Sequence record: NC_091964.1
Length of the DNA: 64,000 bases
Direction: 5' to 3' (one strand)
The translations under genes were made by a program, and so were the position numbers. The notes under the pieces were generated by a model, which did no database searches, was not told the origin of the DNA, and saw only the letters and a program-made list of their open reading frames with translations. Positions 28,677 to 37,272 of this stretch are shown here, piece by piece (position 1 is the first letter of the stretch; every line of letters begins with the position of its first letter).

Positions 28677-29651
28677 ATGGAACAGACTAACAAAAAGATC
28701 GGCATCTATGGTTGCGGCGGTGGCGGCACTAATCTTCTGGCAATGGTCGAGAAGAAAATCAAAACCGAAAACCTGGCTGGCGTTTATGCCCCGTACAACG
28801 CTGTTTATATCGACAGCTCCGAATCTAACTTCGATGACCTGATCCCAGCCGGTGCCCAGAAGTATCGTATCGCTAACATGGATGGCGCGGGCAAGATCCG
28901 TGACGACATGCTCGAACCGGCTCGCCGCGAAGCGCCGAACATTCTTTTCCAGTACCCGCCTCAGGATGTTAACATTCTGGTCTGTACAGCAGGCGGCGGT
29001 ACAGGTGCTATCCTGGCAACCGTGCTGGCTGAGAAAATGTGGGAAGCGGGTAAACGTGTTATCTTCGTTTCTCCGGCATCTATCGAATCCGGTAAAACAG
29101 CGAAAAACTCCCTGGGCCACATCCGTACCCTGAACAACCGTGCAAAAGCCAACGGCCAAACGTCGGTACTGTTCTACGACAACAACGAAGCCGGTAACAA
29201 AAACCGTAACGAAGTTGACCGTGGTATGGTGCTGGGTATCTGCGCCCTGCTCGATCTGTACAGCGGTAAACATCGTGAGATGGATACCAAAGACGTTGAG
29301 CAATGGCTGAACCTGGGCAAATCCGCGAACCTGGAACCGCAGCTGGTACTTCTCGATATCGACACTAATATCGAAGATGCGAAAGCTCGCCAGTACCCGA
29401 TCTCCATCAACGCGATCTACTCCGAAGCTGATGCGACCAAAGGTTCTCCTTCTGCCGACTATCTGTCCGAAGGTTATCGTCGCGATGGCGGCGGTTCTCT
29501 GTTCTTCAGTATCCACACTGACGGCCTGGGCAACATCGCCAACGACCTGCAAGCAGTTGTAACCAGCTACGAGCAGCGCGCTGCTGCCCGCCAGTCTACT
29601 GCTAACAATGCGCTGGGCTCCAGCAACAGCAACGACGGCTGGGAGCTGTAA
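28677..29651 (+). CDS. phuZ: Phage tubulin PhuZ
   Basis: GCGGGGTN, GAGKIR and tubulin signature AGGGTG; 324 aa; strong codon bias. Confidence 0.93.
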   Translation: MEQTNKKIGIYGCGGGGTNLLAMVEKKIKTENLAGVYAPYNAVYIDSSESNFDDLIPAGAQKYRIANMDGAGKIRDDMLEPARREAPNILFQYPPQDVNILVCTAGGGTGAILATVLAEKMWEAGKRVIFVSPASIESGKTAKNSLGHIRTLNNRAKANGQTSVLFYDNNEAGNKNRNEVDRGMVLGICALLDLYSGKHREMDTKDVEQWLNLGKSANLEPQLVLLDIDTNIEDAKARQYPISINAIYSEADATKGSPSADYLSEGYRRDGGGSLFFSIHTDGLGNIANDLQAVVTSYEQRAAARQSTANNALGSSNSNDGWEL

Positions 29652-30124: not shown

Positions 30125-30450
30125 CTTTAAGCCTTCCTTAATGGATCGGCTTTTAAAGCGCCGCTTGACGATGTGCAAGTAAAATAATACATCCTATGTA
30201 GAAGACCGCTTGCGCTTCACTTATCATCCACGCTCGCGGTCGTAATTCTACATTAAAAATCTGGCAACTCACAAGCCGCTTTGGTGCGGAATGAGAAAGG
30301 CGATCTTCTGCGAAATTCGCCTGGTAGGGAATCGACACAATGCTGCTATGGCTAAGCGCTGCACGAGCGCCTGAGGACTAGCGGCTGAAAGTTCGTAGTA
30401 CTTACTGTAAACTGAGATCTCTCCCTGCCTGATGGCAGGGTAGAGGTCAC
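30124..30450 (+). ncRNA. Candidate structured non-coding RNA or long structured 3-prime UTR (strand inferred)
   Basis: No credible CDS; seven consecutive stems found by eye (30124-30159, 30163-30180, 30196-30253, 30268-30295, 30298-30322, 30342-30385, 30416-30448) followed by a U-tract. Confidence 0.45.
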
Positions 30451-30485
30451 ACCTTTATTTTTTTTTTGTTTAAGCAATTTACGGG

Positions 30486-30504
30486 TATATATTATCATTG
30501 TGTA
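30486..30504 (+). promoter_or_regulatory. Early-type phage promoter driving the tandem array
   Basis: TATATATTATCATTGTGTA. Confidence 0.65.
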
Positions 30505-30595: not shown

Positions 30596-31063
30596 ATGGA
30601 TTCTGAGAAGGTAGAGCTGCAAGCTTTTGTATTCGGGATGAGTTCGGTGCTTAAACTCCACCATCGCAAAGGGAAGTTACCAGCATCTCTTCCTAATATA
30701 GTTGCAGCTGCTATTAGTGCCTACTGGGAGAATGGTTCTTACGAAGGATTCTGTAAGATAATGTCGGAAAGGATTATCACCGTAGCAATAAAGGAAACAA
30801 GGATGTTGGCCGAGATCCCAGATCGGCTTTATAGTGAGAAGGATCACGCAGCATTCCTGGAAGCATTATACCAGGAAGTGTATAGCTTCTTTGAACTTTG
30901 CTTCATGGAAGACTATCGGTATCTCGCTCGCTCGTTTTATACAGGTGATTCGATCATGGTAGTGTTCGCACGTAAACCATGCACGGTGACTTATATTGAG
31001 ACGGGTCCATTCACCGGCGTCTATAAGGTCAGCATGGCCAAAATAAAAGAAGATGAGAAATGA
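30596..31063 (+). CDS. Tandem array member 1 (155 aa)
   Basis: SD GGAGG; first gene after promoter 30486; AFVFGM...RSFYTGDSIMVVF. Confidence 0.6.
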   Translation: MDSEKVELQAFVFGMSSVLKLHHRKGKLPASLPNIVAAAISAYWENGSYEGFCKIMSERIITVAIKETRMLAEIPDRLYSEKDHAAFLEALYQEVYSFFELCFMEDYRYLARSFYTGDSIMVVFARKPCTVTYIETGPFTGVYKVSMAKIKEDEK

Positions 31064-31517
31064 CAAGTTAACGGTAATAATAGATATCAAAAGACTCTTT
31101 CGCATCTGCGATGAGTTCTTCCCTTTTCTTAGTCAGGATGATTACAATGAAGTCATTCGATATAAGTTAAGCAAGGAGAACTGTTACGATGTCGAGGGAT
31201 TCAGTCATCAGCATGTAGGTTCCTTCACTCACATGCTACTCAATCAAATACAAAATGCAGGTGGTTTCTTTATACGACTACCTCCAGGAGTAATTAGCAT
31301 TGGGGAGATCACGACGAATAAGACGACTGCTCGAATCGTCTGCTCCGGAAAGGGAGGAGTGTTTAATTCTGACGGAACCGTCCGCTCTGCGGATTCTCCG
31401 TTACGACTTGGTGTTCACCGACAAGCTGAAAGACAGCGAGATAGAAGACTTGATTTTATCTTGGGTGACCGCTTACCAGGCACTTCGAACGCCGTTCGAG
31501 TCATTCTGGGAATTTAA
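31053..31517 (+). CDS. Tandem array member 2 (154 aa)
   Basis: VIIDIKRL...GEITTNKTTARIV; tail overlaps next gene. Confidence 0.55.
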   Translation: MRNDKLTVIIDIKRLFRICDEFFPFLSQDDYNEVIRYKLSKENCYDVEGFSHQHVGSFTHMLLNQIQNAGGFFIRLPPGVISIGEITTNKTTARIVCSGKGGVFNSDGTVRSADSPLRLGVHRQAERQRDRRLDFILGDRLPGTSNAVRVILGI

Positions 31518-31809
31518 ACTCTCCGAACGTAAGAGCTATATTGACGATCTAGGCGAACATCTACAAGCTTGGTTCTACGATAAGTTCTTGATGGACTTCA
31601 CCGAGGATCTGAACGAAGAAGAAAAAGACAAGATCGAAGAGCGATGGTTCAATTGGCTCGACGTGATTGAGTTAGTCCAAACTTCTGATTACTTCGAACT
31701 GCTATACCGTTTCATCGAACAGATAGCGGATGTTGATTACGAAATCGACAAAGTCAAAGTAACCAGACGAAAGGTGATAATTGAGTATGGACAACGTAGT
31801 AGTAATTGA
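31300..31809 (+). CDS. Tandem array member 3 (start uncertain: TTG 31300 or ATT 31366)
   Basis: LILTEP...IDKVKVTRRKVIIEY; acidic helical core. Confidence 0.55.
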   Translation: MGRSRRIRRLLESSAPEREECLILTEPSALRILRYDLVFTDKLKDSEIEDLILSWVTAYQALRTPFESFWEFKLSERKSYIDDLGEHLQAWFYDKFLMDFTEDLNEEEKDKIEERWFNWLDVIELVQTSDYFELLYRFIEQIADVDYEIDKVKVTRRKVIIEYGQRSSN

Positions 31810-32278
31810 CCTCAGAAGACTTATCCTTAACGCAGACATCTATATCGATCGTCTGTTACGCGAACATCCTAAACTCGCTACACGGATTACTTACAGCCGT
31901 AGCAAGCGCGGGCCGTTACGCGAATACATCTACAACCGGTTCTGGAACATTCTCAACGAAACGACGAAATATAAGTTCGATGAGTTGGAAGAAGACCTTT
32001 ACCTCGGACAGATGTTTAAAGACTGGAACCCGCAAAGTTGGTATCGTGACGAGAACAAAGATCTCATTATCGATGACCAGGGTTCTTTCGATTTTCTTAG
32101 TGGGTGGGTAGAAGAGCTTGATGGTGATCTTAATACGATCATCAGCAAAGAGCGTTTGAATGTCGGTTGGAAGATACTTCAGATCGATATCTCATCTACC
32201 ACACTTACCGTAGAGTTATACGGAGATTGGCGTGCGCAGAAATGGTGCGAGGAGAATAACATCGAATACAAGCTCTAG
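31787..32278 (+). CDS. Tandem array member 4 (163 aa)
   Basis: VVVIDLRRL...ILQIDISSTTLTVEL. Confidence 0.6.
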   Translation: MDNVVVIDLRRLILNADIYIDRLLREHPKLATRITYSRSKRGPLREYIYNRFWNILNETTKYKFDELEEDLYLGQMFKDWNPQSWYRDENKDLIIDDQGSFDFLSGWVEELDGDLNTIISKERLNVGWKILQIDISSTTLTVELYGDWRAQKWCEENNIEYKL

Positions 32279-32624
32279 ACCAGCTTTTATAATTCCAATA
32301 TCTGGTCAATTACGGTACTTCATACACGCAGTTGAAAAACTCGACGAAGATGCGGCGTTGGGTGTTAATGAGAAAGACGTTTTCCGTTGCCTCATTACCG
32401 ACGCCCTTGACATGGATGACCCCAGGCTTGCTCGTAAGTATGAACGCTTTGTCGATGAGTATGGGGCATTCGGTATCGATCGAATGGATATAATGACCTT
32501 GTTCGAAGAGGTCGTTTTTAGATTAGAAGAATTATTCAGAGAGCACGGGGTTCATCCAGGACCCCGTTACTCTTTCAGCTGGCTTCCTAACAGCAGGAAT
32601 GTATTCATTTACGAAGAGGACTAA
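32232..32624 (+). CDS. Tandem array member 5 (130 aa, GTG start)
   Basis: SD GGAG 6 nt upstream; FIIPIS...YSFSWLPNSRNVFIY. Confidence 0.55.
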   Translation: MRRNGARRITSNTSSRPAFIIPISGQLRYFIHAVEKLDEDAALGVNEKDVFRCLITDALDMDDPRLARKYERFVDEYGAFGIDRMDIMTLFEEVVFRLEELFREHGVHPGPRYSFSWLPNSRNVFIYEED

Positions 32625-32626
32625 CT

Positions 32627-33010
32627 ATGTATTTGATAGACGCTCGGCGTAAAAACAAGGAATTAATTCGCCTGGCGAAAGAAGCTAAAGATCGCTACCG
32701 TATTCAGCTGGTTGATTTCTATCGTCTGGCTACGATCACGGCATATGCGATCGAAATAACACCAATAACAAGAAAGTCGCAGCATTACGCAACTGATATG
32801 TCTACCCTTACTTATGTCACGGATGAAATTATTCGTATATTAGGTGAGGATTACTTGGACAGAGAGTATCGTGGGCTACATGCGTTAATCGGTGTTGCAG
32901 GGACTGCCATGAGAAGTAACCTACCTCCCATCGACGAGGATACTGACTTACGTCGTCTTCGCGTTGCTCCTGACTTACTGAAAGGGTTGATTTATGCGAG
33001 GGAGAGATGA
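32627..33010 (+). CDS. Tandem array member 6 (127 aa)
   Basis: SD GAGG; YLIDARR...LRRLRVAPDLLKGLIY. Confidence 0.6.
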   Translation: MYLIDARRKNKELIRLAKEAKDRYRIQLVDFYRLATITAYAIEITPITRKSQHYATDMSTLTYVTDEIIRILGEDYLDREYRGLHALIGVAGTAMRSNLPPIDEDTDLRRLRVAPDLLKGLIYARER

Positions 33011-33360
33011 TTATAATTCTACCAATGTCGAGGCCGCTCTATAAGTACTTAGACGACTTAGAAACTGGCAGCTTCGGCCAAAGTCTTCTTTCGATTGTGC
33101 TCACGGGGTTCCTTAACAATATGATGGTAAGGAACTTCGACCTGAAATCTCATCTCTTCGATGTTGATTATATTGATGGGCTGTACGGGTCAGAGTGCAC
33201 TGATATAAAACAAGCGATGTCTATGGTTATTGCCAAAATGACTATAGCATACAGAACGTACTTCCCCCACCGGAAGTATACCGATATTTCAATACGACGG
33301 GCTACCTACACACGGAGCTCGTTGAGGTTCTCGATCGAGGTGCCTGATGAGCGTCGATAA
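33007..33360 (+). CDS. Tandem array member 7 (117 aa)
   Basis: ATGA overlap; IIILPMS...IRRATYTRSSLRFSIEV. Confidence 0.6.
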   Translation: MIIILPMSRPLYKYLDDLETGSFGQSLLSIVLTGFLNNMMVRNFDLKSHLFDVDYIDGLYGSECTDIKQAMSMVIAKMTIAYRTYFPHRKYTDISIRRATYTRSSLRFSIEVPDERR

Positions 33361-33820
33361 ACACATCTTTATCGTGCCGTTACAGACAATGACTCGTAAG
33401 TCTTTTGAGACGTACTTAAAAGACCGCTACGACTTTCTGGATTACGACTTCGTTTTAAGGAACGCTTTACAGTTATGGATTGATTACCTCCAGGACCCTG
33501 ATGGAGAATGGTATACCAACGTAGAGGAAGAAATTCACCTCGACTATGGTAGCCAGATCTCTAAGATGGCAGGACGGATGGTCTTCCGTGACGGTAAGAA
33601 CGACGCAACGCGTGATAGACGCATCGATTACAAGCAAAAACTAGTCGACACGATGGTGGCTGAAATCGGTAAGCATATTACGCATGTTAGCAATTATATA
33701 TCCGACCGGTTAGAGGAAGAAGAGATCGAAGATCTTGTTCTTGGCTCTGAGTACGAAGTTCTCGTTAAGTCGGCGTGGATGTCCGGTCGAAGTATAAAGT
33801 TTGTAGTCGAGGAAATTTAA
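33347..33820 (+). CDS. Tandem array member 8 (157 aa)
   Basis: SD GAGGTG; IFIVPLQ...VKSAWMSGRSIKFVV. Confidence 0.6.
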   Translation: MSVDKHIFIVPLQTMTRKSFETYLKDRYDFLDYDFVLRNALQLWIDYLQDPDGEWYTNVEEEIHLDYGSQISKMAGRMVFRDGKNDATRDRRIDYKQKLVDTMVAEIGKHITHVSNYISDRLEEEEIEDLVLGSEYEVLVKSAWMSGRSIKFVVEEI

Positions 33821-33821
33821 T

Positions 33822-34202
33822 ATGGGTAGAAGACGCAGCAGTCCCGTCGTCGTCATGCCCGCAAGAGAGTTCATCAACAAAGTTAGCTTCTTGAATGCTT
33901 TTATTCCAGAAGGCGTCTATTTAGATGAGGCTAACTTCATCGGTAATGTCTTTGACAACGTATTCAACGAACTAGACATTCCAATCTCAGAGATTGCGAG
34001 AACATGCTTCCACATGGTCCCGCACGCTGACCTGGATGATATTGCTTTTGCCAGAAATATCATCGATGAAAACTTTAGTCATTTTGCGGACTTATTACGA
34101 CTAGCGAAGGATAATGCTCGAGCTTATATGCCGAGCTATAATTACGTCGATTTAGTGCGGATAAGTTGGGATACAAAATCTTTATATCTGAAGGTGCTAT
34201 GA
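33822..34202 (+). CDS. Tandem array member 9 (126 aa)
   Basis: SD GAGGA; VVVMPAR...LVRISWDTKSLYLKV. Confidence 0.6.
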   Translation: MGRRRSSPVVVMPAREFINKVSFLNAFIPEGVYLDEANFIGNVFDNVFNELDIPISEIARTCFHMVPHADLDDIAFARNIIDENFSHFADLLRLAKDNARAYMPSYNYVDLVRISWDTKSLYLKVL

Positions 34203-34513
34203 ATACGATAATTTGTATGCAAAGCCCAATGATTACCCGACTTGTTAGAATGTTGGATGAGCATCTGAGTGCGCAGGACATTCCGCCTTGCATGGACTCG
34301 AGAAGTCAGTTCCTGACCAGAGCCTGTAAGATAGATTTTACTACCATTCATCCGGTCCGTAGTCTTTTCGACGATAACCGTGAACTGTTCAACGCTTATC
34401 TTGATTTCTCTCAGGCGGTGATCGATAGTTGGGATCAACCACCCAGTGTACGTTCCATCGAAGTCATTTCCGTAAATGAAGTTAACGCGAAGCTCGCGAT
34501 GGAATTTTATTAA
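34199..34513 (+). CDS. Tandem array member 10 (104 aa)
   Basis: ATGA overlap, SD AAGGTG; TIICMQS...IEVISVNEVNAKLAM. Confidence 0.55.
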   Translation: MNTIICMQSPMITRLVRMLDEHLSAQDIPPCMDSRSQFLTRACKIDFTTIHPVRSLFDDNRELFNAYLDFSQAVIDSWDQPPSVRSIEVISVNEVNAKLAMEFY

Positions 34514-34523
34514 AGAGGGCAAG

Positions 34524-34940
34524 ATGGACATTTTAGACAGATTCAACCTTAAAGAAACCGTGACGTTCCAATTATATACAGGGGCGTCAGCGGTGATACC
34601 AGATTCCTTTACGCGCTGCGCCGTCACCAGTAAAGTGGATTACGACGATGTACGTAACTTCGGTTTCGACCCGGACGTATTGCACCAGCTCGTTTTTCCA
34701 ACGTTGCCTGCTAATACCTGTCCATCCGACCCCTCCAAATATAACTGGCTCATTGTCAAGACGTTGACCGGTAGCCGCGCATGTATCGGCGAAGACTGGA
34801 TTAACCCTGAAACAATCGAAGCAACAACTAACACCGGCTTGACTATCTACTGTTCGGCTTCCCCGCGTAACAGTATTAACCTTGCTCGGCAAATACTAAC
34901 CGCTAACGGCTTTACTGTAGCCAGCATTGAGCCAGACTGA
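34524..34940 (+). CDS. Conserved protein upstream of the polymerase (phiKZ gp49 position, 138 aa)
   Basis: SD GAGGG; VTFQLY...DPSKYNWLIVK...IGEDWINPETI; synteny. Confidence 0.55.
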   Translation: MDILDRFNLKETVTFQLYTGASAVIPDSFTRCAVTSKVDYDDVRNFGFDPDVLHQLVFPTLPANTCPSDPSKYNWLIVKTLTGSRACIGEDWINPETIEATTNTGLTIYCSASPRNSINLARQILTANGFTVASIEPD

Positions 34941-34975
34941 ATTACCGTAACTTGAACCGTTTCGTACTGGTTTTG

Positions 34976-35005
34976 AGAGAGGGATTTTCCCTCTCTTTTT
35001 TTTTT
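34976..35005 (+). terminator. Intrinsic terminator closing the array operon
   Basis: AGAGAGGGA-TTT-TCCCTCTCT plus T-tract. Confidence 0.8.
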
Positions 35006-35070
35006 GTTTTTTTTTTGATTCCTTCTTGTATTGGTATAGAGAGAAATATTTTTTCCATTAGGTGGACTAC

Positions 35071-37272
35071 ATGGCAGCCTTTGTTAATAATCCATTTAAT
35101 CGCAAAGCTTCGGACTATGTCCGTGACATTAACGTCATCGAAGGTGCGATTAACCAGTTCGCGATTATCTTATCACGTACCTATAAACAATCTTATCAAG
35201 AAGCGCGTGATTATGTAGTCGATGAACTGAAGAACGGGAACAAACGTTTCCACGACCCGATCATGCGTTACCTCCAGCAAGATGAGAACGAAGATAGACA
35301 TCCTGCTGAAATGAAGTTCTCGCAGTACATTAGTTCTGCTGTTCGTGATAAGTTGTTAATGGCACCGACCTTTACACAGATCCTGCCACCTGACCAGAAA
35401 GAATCATTACTTTCTAGCTACATCAAGGTCAACTTATCAAAACGTAATGCGGAGAAGAAGCTTCAGTTAAAAGCATCTAACCACGGCGACAAGTTCCGTG
35501 AAACTCTCCACAAGAACAACCAGAATAACAAAAAGATTCTGAACAACGCCATATCCGGAAACCACCGTTCCATTCACTCGATTCTTTACGATCGACCAGT
35601 GCATCCGATACTGACAAGCTGCTGTCGTATTGCGAACGGTTCTGCGAACTCGAATAACGATAGACTGTTAACAGGTTCGCGTCATTATTACAATCCGGAT
35701 GTCGTGCTAGCCAACATAGCCTCAATTATAGAGCTATCGGATTGGGACCTTGTTAAGAGAGCAGTGGATAAACATAATCTCCATCAACCAACAGTCGAAG
35801 AGACTATGGCGGTGATTAGACGATCAACTGACCTCTATTGGAATACGAGCAACGGATTACGCTACATTATCCAATTCGTAGAGCAGCTCGATGGGTATGA
35901 ACGTGCAGCAGTGTGCTATATGGGCGACCTATACCACCTGGCGCAGTTTAATGACAGCGTGGTACGTGATATACTGGATTCTCTTGTAAACATCCCTACG
36001 GAGCGTGTAGAGAACCATTTCGAATGGCTCAACCATGTCGACGAAGATACACAGGCGCAGATCAAAGTGCGATTCCCTGATATCGTCGGTAAGGAACACT
36101 TCTGGCATGATGATGTTAAAGCTCATCCGGATTACCCGCTTATCGGTTCAATGGCTAAGCAGATCTATTATACGCTGGACCATTACGCCGATGTAATAAA
36201 TGCGTTCTTGATGTCTAAGAACGTACCGTTCCTTATTTCCGATTTCCCTTCCGCTGTCCGTCGTGCAGGGGTAGGCTCCGATACCGACTCCGCAATCTTT
36301 ACTGTTCAGGATTGGGCAATATGGTACAACGGGAATGATGATGTCACGTACGACAACATTCTCCTATCGGAAGCAATGGCTTTCATTGTATCTGAAACCA
36401 CAACGCACAACCTGGCCACCCAGACAGTCAATATGGGTGTAACCGACGAGAAGGAAGTATTCCGTCTCTCGATGAAGAACGAATATCTGTTCCCTGTCTT
36501 TATGCTGACGTCACGTGCCAAACACTACGCAGCGTTGCAGAAGGTACAGGAAGGTATTATCTTCGATAAAGCCAAACTGGAGAAGAAGGGCGTGGAACTA
36601 CACGCATCGAACTCACCAGAAGGTATTCGTAAAGACCTTGACAAGATGATTGTCGATGTATTGACAAAACAAGAGAGAGGGGAGAAGATTTCTTTACACT
36701 CGATGTTGGTACATGTTGCCGAATGGGAACATCGAATCTTTAACTCGATTACCGCTGGCGAAACAACGTACCTTAAATCCGCACGTGTAAAAGAAGAGGA
36801 TGGGTATACGAAGGAAGCAGAGAAGTCGCGTTACATGAACTTCATGCTTTGGTCTGAAGTGTTTGCTGACACTTATGGCGCATCATTACCGCCGCCGTAT
36901 TCAGCACTTGCGTTCAGTATCATTCCTGATACGAAGAACAAGACAAAAAAATGGCTGGATGAATGGCCTAACCAAGAACGAGCAGAAAGACTCCGTTCGT
37001 TCATGGCCAGGGTTAAGAAAGACTACTTGGGTGAGATCCTCTTACCTGAGGAGAACGTCATGTCCTACGGTATCCCATCCGAGATTCTGGATGTGATCGA
37101 TGTCCGTAAGATCGTTGCGAAAGCGGTTTCTCCTTTCTACTTGTTCTTAGAGTCATTCGAGTTCTACCTGCAAGATAAAGACCAATGTAAATTGATCATG
37201 GACTTTATCTCACAAGAGGACGTCGACAACTTTAAAGCAAGTAAGGAAGAATCCCCTTCTCAAAAAGATTGA
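35071..37272 (+). CDS. B-family DNA polymerase, polymerase-domain subunit of the split phiKZ-type enzyme (gp50-like)
   Basis: Motif B KKILNNAISG, motif C GSDTDS, AKHYA; position between phuZ and chimallin. Confidence 0.85.
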   Translation: MAAFVNNPFNRKASDYVRDINVIEGAINQFAIILSRTYKQSYQEARDYVVDELKNGNKRFHDPIMRYLQQDENEDRHPAEMKFSQYISSAVRDKLLMAPTFTQILPPDQKESLLSSYIKVNLSKRNAEKKLQLKASNHGDKFRETLHKNNQNNKKILNNAISGNHRSIHSILYDRPVHPILTSCCRIANGSANSNNDRLLTGSRHYYNPDVVLANIASIIELSDWDLVKRAVDKHNLHQPTVEETMAVIRRSTDLYWNTSNGLRYIIQFVEQLDGYERAAVCYMGDLYHLAQFNDSVVRDILDSLVNIPTERVENHFEWLNHVDEDTQAQIKVRFPDIVGKEHFWHDDVKAHPDYPLIGSMAKQIYYTLDHYADVINAFLMSKNVPFLISDFPSAVRRAGVGSDTDSAIFTVQDWAIWYNGNDDVTYDNILLSEAMAFIVSETTTHNLATQTVNMGVTDEKEVFRLSMKNEYLFPVFMLTSRAKHYAALQKVQEGIIFDKAKLEKKGVELHASNSPEGIRKDLDKMIVDVLTKQERGEKISLHSMLVHVAEWEHRIFNSITAGETTYLKSARVKEEDGYTKEAEKSRYMNFMLWSEVFADTYGASLPPPYSALAFSIIPDTKNKTKKWLDEWPNQERAERLRSFMARVKKDYLGEILLPEENVMSYGIPSEILDVIDVRKIVAKAVSPFYLFLESFEFYLQDKDQCKLIMDFISQEDVDNFKASKEESPSQKD

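Follow-up and report, generated by a model that had tools for sequence, protein, structure and literature searches.

Ten small genes between PhuZ and the DNA polymerase of Serratia phage PCH45: a putative same-fold array and its likeness to the phiKZ gp43-gp48 block

The stretch of DNA analysed here (the window) comprises the final 64 kb of the genome of Serratia phage PCH45, a nucleus-forming phage (MN334766, positions 148808-212807; 100% identity). The subject of this study is an array of ten small open reading frames (ORFs) on its + strand, located between the genes for PhuZ (28677-29651, gp187; Pfam TubZ_C_2) and a divergent family-B DNA polymerase (35071-37272): gp189-gp197 of the GenBank record and one unannotated ORF, referred to in gene order as o1, o2a, o2b and o3 to o9, and followed by the gene for SH3DP. 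Predicted structures pointed to a common alpha/beta fold in several of these proteins, and their distribution among relatives to a long-standing orthology position by position. As our favoured, if tentative, explanation, the block would be the PCH45 form of the phiKZ gp43-gp48 module: an ancient array of same-fold proteins, at least some of which would serve as cargo-specific adaptors or escorts at the Imp1/PicA gate.

How a protein-walled phage nucleus chooses its cargo is an open question: Imp1/PicA is the only gate protein known to be conserved, and the known cargo-specific adaptors, such as Imp2 and Imp4 of phiKZ, had been regarded as confined to phiKZ-like Pseudomonas phages. The present finding may extend the Imp2-type block, on structural grounds, to distant chimalliviruses, the membership of the PCH45 proteins being putative. 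In the literature searched, no paper described this interval as an array of same-fold paralogues, and none named PHIKZ043-048 by locus.

Predicted fold of the array proteins

The AlphaFold2 model of o3 (13 sequences) had a mean predicted local distance difference test score (pLDDT) of 94 and a predicted template modelling score (pTM) of 0.85, and that of o8 (16 sequences) a pLDDT of 88 and a pTM of 0.82. The o3 model consisted of a strand (residues 3-8), helices 9-26, 28-32, 42-57 and 70-76, two short strands, a long helix (98-121), a hairpin (130-135/139-145) and a helix (148-156). The o8 model consisted of a strand (9-13), a helix (15-27), a short strand, helices 36-48 and 55-62, a further short strand, a long helix (71-98) and a hairpin (109-115/120-125). 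The order of the elements was identical in the two models, o3 carrying an insertion and an extra C-terminal helix; this order and the common neighbours in Foldseek searches were the basis on which the likeness of o3 and o8 was judged.

Among the top 50 matches listed for each model in the BFVD database, 16 were common to o3 and o8, and nearly all were chimallivirus or other jumbo-phage proteins, many with a probability of at least 0.95. The matches listed for o8 included PhiEaH1 gp027, which occupies the o8 position (template modelling score (TM) 0.79), and PhiEaH1 gp030, the orthologue of o4 (probability 0.99, TM 0.57/0.58), while the match of o8 to the o3 orthologue, PhiEaH1 gp031, was weak (probability 0.33). 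Five matches from phage Eowyn (gp075, gp076, gp081, gp083 and gp084) belong to the 11 small genes between PhuZ and SH3DP of that phage, and the TM between o8 and Eowyn gp083 was 0.59/0.63. The location of the matched PhiEaH1 proteins (gp027, gp030 and gp031) and of the five Eowyn proteins in the interval was confirmed by exact-sequence look-up. A Foldseek search of the PDB with o3 gave a best E-value (E) of 0.22 with TM below 0.26, and the fold is therefore not a generic one; the work defines a fold family that is missing from both Pfam and the PDB.

An earlier reading of the window, made from the sequence only, had described each member as an N-terminal hydrophobic strand, a variable core and a C-terminal two-strand hairpin, that is, one scaffold with hypervariable surfaces. 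Strand and hairpin were found in the AlphaFold2 models of o3 and o8, and are predicted from motifs for the other eight members. In the families of o2b, o3, o4, o6, o7 and o8, a motif recurred at the last strand: a turn of small or polar residues led into a strand with alternating hydrophobic residues, often with an acidic end. In a test defined post hoc, nine of the ten array members combined a hydrophobic run at the N-terminus with an alternating pattern at the C-terminus, versus two of 22 other small ORFs in the window (p about 2e-5). At the level of structure, the single scaffold was supported for o3 and o8 and, through its orthologue, for o4; no sequence method detected paralogy. Hypervariable surfaces were weakly supported overall: in the o8 family the strands were better conserved than the helices, a difference that the o3 family did not show. 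The check proposed by that reading, structure prediction combined with Foldseek and HHalign, spoke for a relationship through the matching element order and the 16 common neighbours of o3 and o8, whereas hhalign provided only a weak link between o4 and o7.

Taken together, the models, fold searches and motifs made membership in one fold family well supported for o3, o4 and o8; o7 likely belongs to it as well, and for o1, o2a, o2b, o5, o6 and o9 the assignment is plausible. The seven members other than o3, o4 and o8 may share the fold, and the array may be homologous with Imp2 and Imp4.

Several results weighed against the favoured explanation. All-against-all BLASTP among the ten array proteins gave no pair below E 0.01, and iterated searches with hidden Markov models (HMMs), run against local collections of 135-244 proteins of the interval, never crossed between positions. 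The best hhalign result between positions (family profiles of 7-17 sequences, three depths) was that of o4 and o7, a probability of 17-33% over 74-76 colinear columns from the N-terminal strand, which is too weak to convince. The models covered o3 and o8, and o4 via its orthologue: three of the ten members. As to the phiKZ proteins, the Imp preprint found Imp2, Imp4 and Imp5 by sequence searches to be conserved only among Pseudomonas phages. A 22-member Imp2 profile reached an hhalign probability of at most 1% against o8 and all other array profiles, and o9 and the other array profiles at most 1.3% against the gp48 (Imp4) family. Since the Foldseek likeness to the Imp2 family was modest (TM 0.38-0.46) and no better than that to other members of the fold family, it is position from which the putative orthology of o8 and Imp2 is drawn. 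Furthermore, co-transcription with SH3DP, in the unit inferred below, and adjacency to the polymerase fit a role in replication equally well.

The silence of the sequence comparisons would also be expected if the ten were unrelated orphan genes with generic small alpha/beta features, the Foldseek overlaps being made up of a few orthologue pairs and low-specificity matches. Many of the Foldseek matches indeed had TM of 0.35-0.5 with E of 0.01-0.3, and two members were modelled directly. We regard this as improbable: BFVD holds viral proteins of all kinds, yet the top-50 matches listed were confined almost entirely to chimalliviruses and jumbo phages; the matches included non-orthologous proteins of the interval (PhiEaH1 gp030 with o8, and the five Eowyn proteins); the PDB returned nothing comparable; and the C-terminal hairpin motif stood at the same structural place in most families. 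In addition, o8 and PhiEaH1 gp027, with TM of 0.79, had an hhalign probability of 0.2%, because of which the absence of a sequence signal is uninformative on homology in this family; sequence searches here missed orthologues with TM as high as 0.79. As a bridge from o8 to PhiEaH1 gp027 or Imp2, 1.84 billion cluster representatives were searched by HMMER with the profile of o8; only ten proteins were returned, all close representatives and none of the Imp2 family. The sequence family at each position is therefore narrow and evolves fast.

Apart from this, a 2540-aa protein (P0131) matched the o8 profile in five separate stretches (E 3.6e-8), best over profile positions 12-46. This may be an artefact of repeats or low complexity, or a large protein with a repeated N-terminal strand-helix unit.

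Conservation of the array and its possible roles

A close comparison was provided by L027, a Logan metagenomic contig with 84% DNA identity to PCH45 and the same gene order. The ratio of nonsynonymous (dN) to synonymous (dS) substitution was 0.08-0.22 for all ten ORFs, and the dN of the array was three to five times that of the polymerase. Because of these ratios and of the orthologues in relatives, the array ORFs are genuine genes, not chance ORFs. The array proteins were 28-54% identical to those of Salmonella phage SPLA10, while the polymerase was 84% identical. Iterated HMM searches recovered 7-17 orthologues per member, with the exception of o1 (four family members including itself). In six close relatives, o2a-o9 all had one-to-one orthologues, and o1 had them in three of the six; variation between these relatives was confined to the 5' end of the array, that is, to o1 or its replacements.

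Orthology extended to more distant phages. By sequence, o5 corresponded to PhiEaH1 gp029 and a Moabite-group protein, o4 to PhiEaH1 gp030, and o2a to PhiEaH1 gp033 and Moabite gp028; hhalign aligned o7 over its full length with the family of PhiEaH1 gp028, FBKp24 gp326 and Moabite gp034 (72%), and o8 with FBKp24 gp327 (66%). The copy-number survey suggested by the sequence-only reading found 8-11 small + strand genes from PhuZ to SH3DP in every relative examined: SPLA10, FBKp24, KpLz-2_45, Moabite, Totoro, PhiEaH1, Eowyn and seven metagenomic contigs, the last retrieved as contigs encoding relatives of o3 and o7. Scans of IMG/VR with SH3DP and polymerase alignments contributed few new relatives, and look-ups of contigs by exact protein were far more productive. 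Since orthologues stood at matching positions across phages, the array is old and did not arise by a recent burst of duplication; it looks more like a positionally fixed orthologue set than a fast-turning repertoire.

During these searches, proteins identical or nearly identical to an array member of SPLA10 (L002, 7780-8148) were found filed as Salmonella enterica, on contigs of ~205 kb; whole jumbo-phage genomes therefore lie inside isolate assemblies, as a carrier state or as contamination.

The fixed content and order of o2a-o9 in close relatives, and the positions kept as far as PhiEaH1 and Eowyn, are unlike the churn of counter-defence islands. They make it unlikely, in our judgement, that the array consists of host-takeover or anti-defence effectors, that is, of early, small and fast-evolving proteins, each of which would bind and neutralise a host or immune factor in the cytoplasm before or during nucleus formation. 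Neither do the dN/dS ratios, which were well below 1 with no positive selection seen at the level of genes, nor the phiKZ block, whose members with known roles are import factors without transposon insertions, agree with such effectors. On the other hand, they would account for the early-type promoter, the small size and lack of known domains, an evolution several-fold faster than that of core genes (as in the identities to SPLA10), the acidity of several members (pI 4.7-4.8), the different 5' ends of the array among close relatives and the non-essential nature of the neighbouring SH3DP gene.

In the adaptor explanation, the interval between PhuZ and the SH3DP-polymerase pair would be, in all chimalliphages examined, a single early transcription unit for about ten small proteins, all derived from one alpha/beta fold that is specific to chimalliviruses and was duplicated in tandem long ago; in this fold a strand at the N-terminus is followed by three main helices, and a hairpin at the C-terminus closes a small sheet. 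Each position would have stayed one-to-one across relatives while evolving several-fold faster than core genes, by which the sequence likeness between positions would have been erased. Produced early in infection, each member would be a small binding module that holds one partner by a variable helical face of its own and engages the conserved PicA/Imp1-Imp3 machinery at the nuclear shell by features common to all; the array would then amount to a fixed collection of adaptors or escorts, serving different nuclear cargos. The stable gene content argues for such fixed roles. A function as adaptors, suggested by position, weak fold likeness, the early-type promoter and stable gene content, is put forward with somewhat more reserve than the module as such.

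That the array is always linked to SH3DP and the polymerase, in phages from PCH45 to those of the phiKZ type, would have another meaning if the array proteins were accessory to replication, acting in the nucleus as partners of the family-B polymerase and SH3DP in assembly, processivity or loading. SH3DP takes its name from the association of this domain with phage polymerases; its co-transcription with the array and the stable one-to-one orthology would both suit a role in replication, and Imp2 is itself a nuclear protein. However, Imp2 and Imp4 were found by import phenotypes (Nlp1 and TopA, respectively), not by replication defects, and ten same-fold paralogues exceed the needs of known replisomes. 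Two further arguments, both weak, are that the polymerase lies behind its own start, separated by a terminator, and that no nucleic-acid-binding or replication domain was detected. Taken together, a replication role appears quite unlikely to us.

A wider form of the adaptor explanation holds that the PhuZ-polymerase interval of all Chimalliviridae is a conserved same-fold adaptor repertoire, of which Imp2 and Imp4 would be two members, each licensing one class of cargo at the PicA/Imp1 gate. We offer this generalisation as doubtful. If it is true, cargo-specific import adaptors would be universal in nucleus-forming phages and not a peculiarity of Pseudomonas phages, every nucleus-forming phage would have a candidate adaptor set, and the identity of the imported proteins could be read from the array.

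Predicted transcription unit and individual genes

The unit comprises, in order, a hairpin, a 10-nt AT-rich motif of early type, eleven genes (the ten of the array and SH3DP) and a terminator. The hairpin (30416..30467, + strand; stem 30416-30448, then a T-run) had an RNA folding free energy (dG) of -26 kcal/mol with a z-score (z) of -5.0, and none of 200 shuffles was as good. Here the PhuZ/gp188 unit located upstream probably terminates, and the array unit has its 5' edge; the hairpin was not listed by a simple terminator scan because its T-run begins 9 nt past the stem. The gene-free stretch of ~290 nt between gp188 and the hairpin (30125-30415) contained no tRNA and no Rfam match; a 61-aa ORF on the minus strand (30153-30338) overlaps it.

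The early-type promoter motif (30486..30495, + strand) was recognised by its recurrence in the window and in relatives. The AT-rich box occurred eight times on the + strand of the 64-kb window (12052, 18740, 19287, 30486, 38376, 39153, 47662 and 53542) and not at all on the - strand. In six close relatives, as well as in FBKp24, a single copy stood directly 5' of the first gene of the array; the FBKp24 record has an annotated promoter ~15 nt downstream of its copy. This is in agreement with the early promoter that the sequence-only reading had placed at 30486, and with the conserved AT-rich motifs of roughly 10 nt known as early (virion RNA polymerase) promoters of jumbo phages (PMC7598289). 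Judged by their sequence, the eight + strand boxes probably mark the early promoters of PCH45. Two copies of the box lie just 5' of the region in which the chimallin gene is expected.

At the other end, an intrinsic terminator (34975..35006, + strand; hairpin and T-run 34975-34997) with a 10-bp GC-rich stem (dG -15.5, z -3.7) closes the unit. It sits past the SH3DP gene (gp198, 34524..34940, + strand; Pfam PF20287, E 3e-34), which is the last gene of the unit and outside the fold family, and the unit therefore consists of eleven genes, not ten. Hence, of the claim of one promoter and one terminator for ten genes, the terminator was confirmed and the number of genes was not. The SH3DP gene is kept from PCH45 to phiKZ-type phages and has been reported as a non-essential core gene.

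The ten tightly coupled or overlapping ORFs described in the sequence-only reading were all present on the + strand. Apart from o2a and o2b, which overlap by 218 nt, neighbours were separated by at most 2 nt or overlapped by up to 47 nt. The first, o1 (gp189, 30596..31063, + strand; 155 aa), is the variable 5' member. Its dN/dS against L027 was 0.12, and orthologues were found only in L027, L030 and L032, other genes being located at that end in SPLA10, L029 and L031.

The second, o2a (31053..31517, + strand; 154 aa), is absent from GenBank and comprises a core of ~105 aa and a basic tail that overlaps o2b. Orthologues at the protein level were found in SPLA10, L027, L029-L032 and PhiEaH1, and the dN/dS of its N-terminal part was 0.06. 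The third, o2b (gp190, 31300..31809, + strand; 169 aa), has a TTG start, overlaps o2a in the +1 frame and is conserved in its N-terminal part in six relatives. Across genomes the overlap was dual-coding and conserved, with a length of 161-218 nt, which is unusually long for a phage gene pair. Both frames of the overlap were conserved as protein in six relatives (including SPLA10 and L029-L032); the o2b frame opened just before a TTG or GTG with a Shine-Dalgarno-like GGAG or GGGG in all seven genomes; and dS was depressed in both frames within the overlap. Near 31300, purifying selection appears to shift out of the reading frame of o2a and into that of o2b, which had suggested one frameshifted gene; this idea was rejected because of the conservation of both frames, the kept start and Shine-Dalgarno sequence of o2b, and the depressed dS in both frames. 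By these signs in the sequences, the two are read as an intact gene pair with a conserved dual-coding overlap.

The best-conserved member, o3 (gp191, 31787..32278, + strand; 163 aa), had 17 orthologues. The long form of o4 (gp192, 32232..32624, + strand; 130 aa) is the orthologue of PhiEaH1 gp030 (W8CZD1). Since the alignment of its family begins at this form, the coding sequence in GenBank (32358-32624, 88 aa) is probably truncated at the N-terminus. The next gene, o5 (gp193, 32627..33010, + strand; 127 aa), had a dN/dS of 0.12, and its orthologues included PhiEaH1 gp029 and, by hhalign, the protein of the Moabite group. For o6 (gp194, 33007..33360, + strand; 117 aa), dN/dS was 0.10 and eight orthologues were found, with a conserved N-terminal strand-Pro motif and the C-terminal hairpin motif. 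The label of o7 (gp195, 33347..33820, + strand; 157 aa) in GenBank is '3-ketoacyl-CoA thiolase'; this found no support, as neither Pfam nor NCBIfam gave a match at E up to 0.1. Thiolases are far longer than 157 aa. Finally, o8 (gp196, 33822..34202, + strand; 126 aa) and o9 (gp197, 34199..34513, + strand; 104 aa; dN/dS 0.08, eight orthologues) are the positional equivalents of phiKZ gp47 (Imp2) and gp48 (Imp4), respectively.

Searches of Pfam and NCBIfam with the array proteins gave nothing meaningful, and Pfam has no family for them or for phiKZ-type gp42.x-gp48; the sole library match of any array member was a weak one of o8 to phrog_11282 (function unknown; E 0.002) in PHROG. Three corrections to the annotation of PCH45 follow from this part of the work: one missing gene (o2a), one truncated gene (o4) and one wrong product name (o7).

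Comparison with the phiKZ gp43-gp48 block

In the Imp preprint, imp2 is orf47, imp4 is orf48 and imp5 is orf287. The sequence-only reading had given imp2 and imp5 as orf47 and orf48, which was right for imp2, while orf48 is imp4; their place in the interval between PhuZ (gp39) and the polymerase (gp50) was given correctly, both being located directly 5' of the SH3DP gene gp49. By phiKZ and PhiPA3 genetics, Imp2 is a nuclear protein that functions in the import of Nlp1 and is itself imported through Imp1, and Imp4 is required for the import of TopA (Imp preprint). No transposon insertions were obtained in phiKZ imp2 and imp4, and a later preprint describes both as cargo-specific adaptors. PCH45 carries the essential PicA/Imp1 (gp211) and Imp3 (gp204), and the core import machinery for such adaptors is therefore present. 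Another protein, JADA (the Avs5 trigger), is phiKZ gp124, and hence unrelated.

The gene orders of the two systems were compared through other records. That of 201phi2-1 cross-references phiKZ gp39 (PhuZ), gp42, gp43, gp47, gp49 and gp50 (polymerase) in the interval. In SL2 the order is gp312, gp311, gp310 (SH3DP) and gp309 (polymerase), gp312 and gp311 being in the 90% clusters of PHIKZ047 and PHIKZ048. As the orders of SL2 and PCH45 agree, Imp2 and Imp4 take the positions of o8 and o9, and gp43 takes that of o3. The comparison with the phiKZ interval that had been proposed from the sequence thus bore out the positions and gave a fold match to the gp43 family and a weak fold likeness to Imp2, with no sequence similarity to Imp2 or Imp4.

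Imp2 (phiKZ gp47; the homologue in PhiPA3 is gp044 according to the Imp preprint, and further counterparts are Psa21 gp042 and 201phi2-1 gp79) is encoded two genes 5' of the SH3DP-polymerase pair, as is o8. Like the array proteins, it is small and has no known domain, and it functions in a phage with Imp1/PicA and Imp3, as found in PCH45; it differs in length (170-289 aa versus 126 aa for o8). Foldseek compared o8 with PhiPA3 gp044 at a probability of 0.72 and a query-normalised TM (TMq) of 0.46, and with Psa21 gp042 at 0.54 and 0.40; o3 was compared with SL2 gp312 at a probability of 0.66 and TM of 0.41/0.38. All of these are below the usual same-fold TM of 0.5. Imp4 (phiKZ gp48) is encoded directly 5' of SH3DP, as is o9, and has 127 aa versus 104 aa. 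Its sequence reads like those of the array proteins, with a hydrophobic, strand-like run at the N-terminus and an alternating pattern at the C-terminus; it was absent among the top-50 Foldseek matches listed for o3 and o8.

The corresponding intervals of other chimalliviruses (PhiEaH1 gp026-gp034, Eowyn gp074-gp084, FBKp24 gp320-gp327 and Moabite gp027-gp036) agree with the array in position, gene number and sizes. In these uncharacterised intervals, orthology was established by sequence for o2a, o3, o4, o5 and o7 and by structure for o8, which is evidence of distribution, not of function.

The closest likeness to the phiKZ block was that of o3 to the gp43 family (function unknown; PhiPA3 gp039, Psa21 gp039 and 201phi2-1 gp75), which, like o3, comes first within the conserved portion of the block. 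The o3 model matched the N-terminal halves of PhiPA3 gp039, Psa21 gp039 and a 358-aa protein with a probability of 1.0 (E 3e-4 to 8e-3, TMq 0.57-0.60), and proteins of Noxifer and Goslar with TMq of 0.48-0.52; o8 also matched the gp43 family (probability 0.69-0.96, TMq up to 0.58), and a weak colinear hhalign match was found between o3 and this family. Proteins of the gp43 family about twice as long as o3 were also noted at L008 9764-10837, L025 7802-8719 and L024 7532-8575. The gp43 family has about 300-365 aa, whereas o3 and its 17 orthologues have 158-175 aa, and the target-normalised TM was ~0.3. While the full-length architecture thus differs, o3 is, on the predicted models, the structural counterpart of the N-terminal half of the gp43 family, where the likeness reached the level usual for the same fold.

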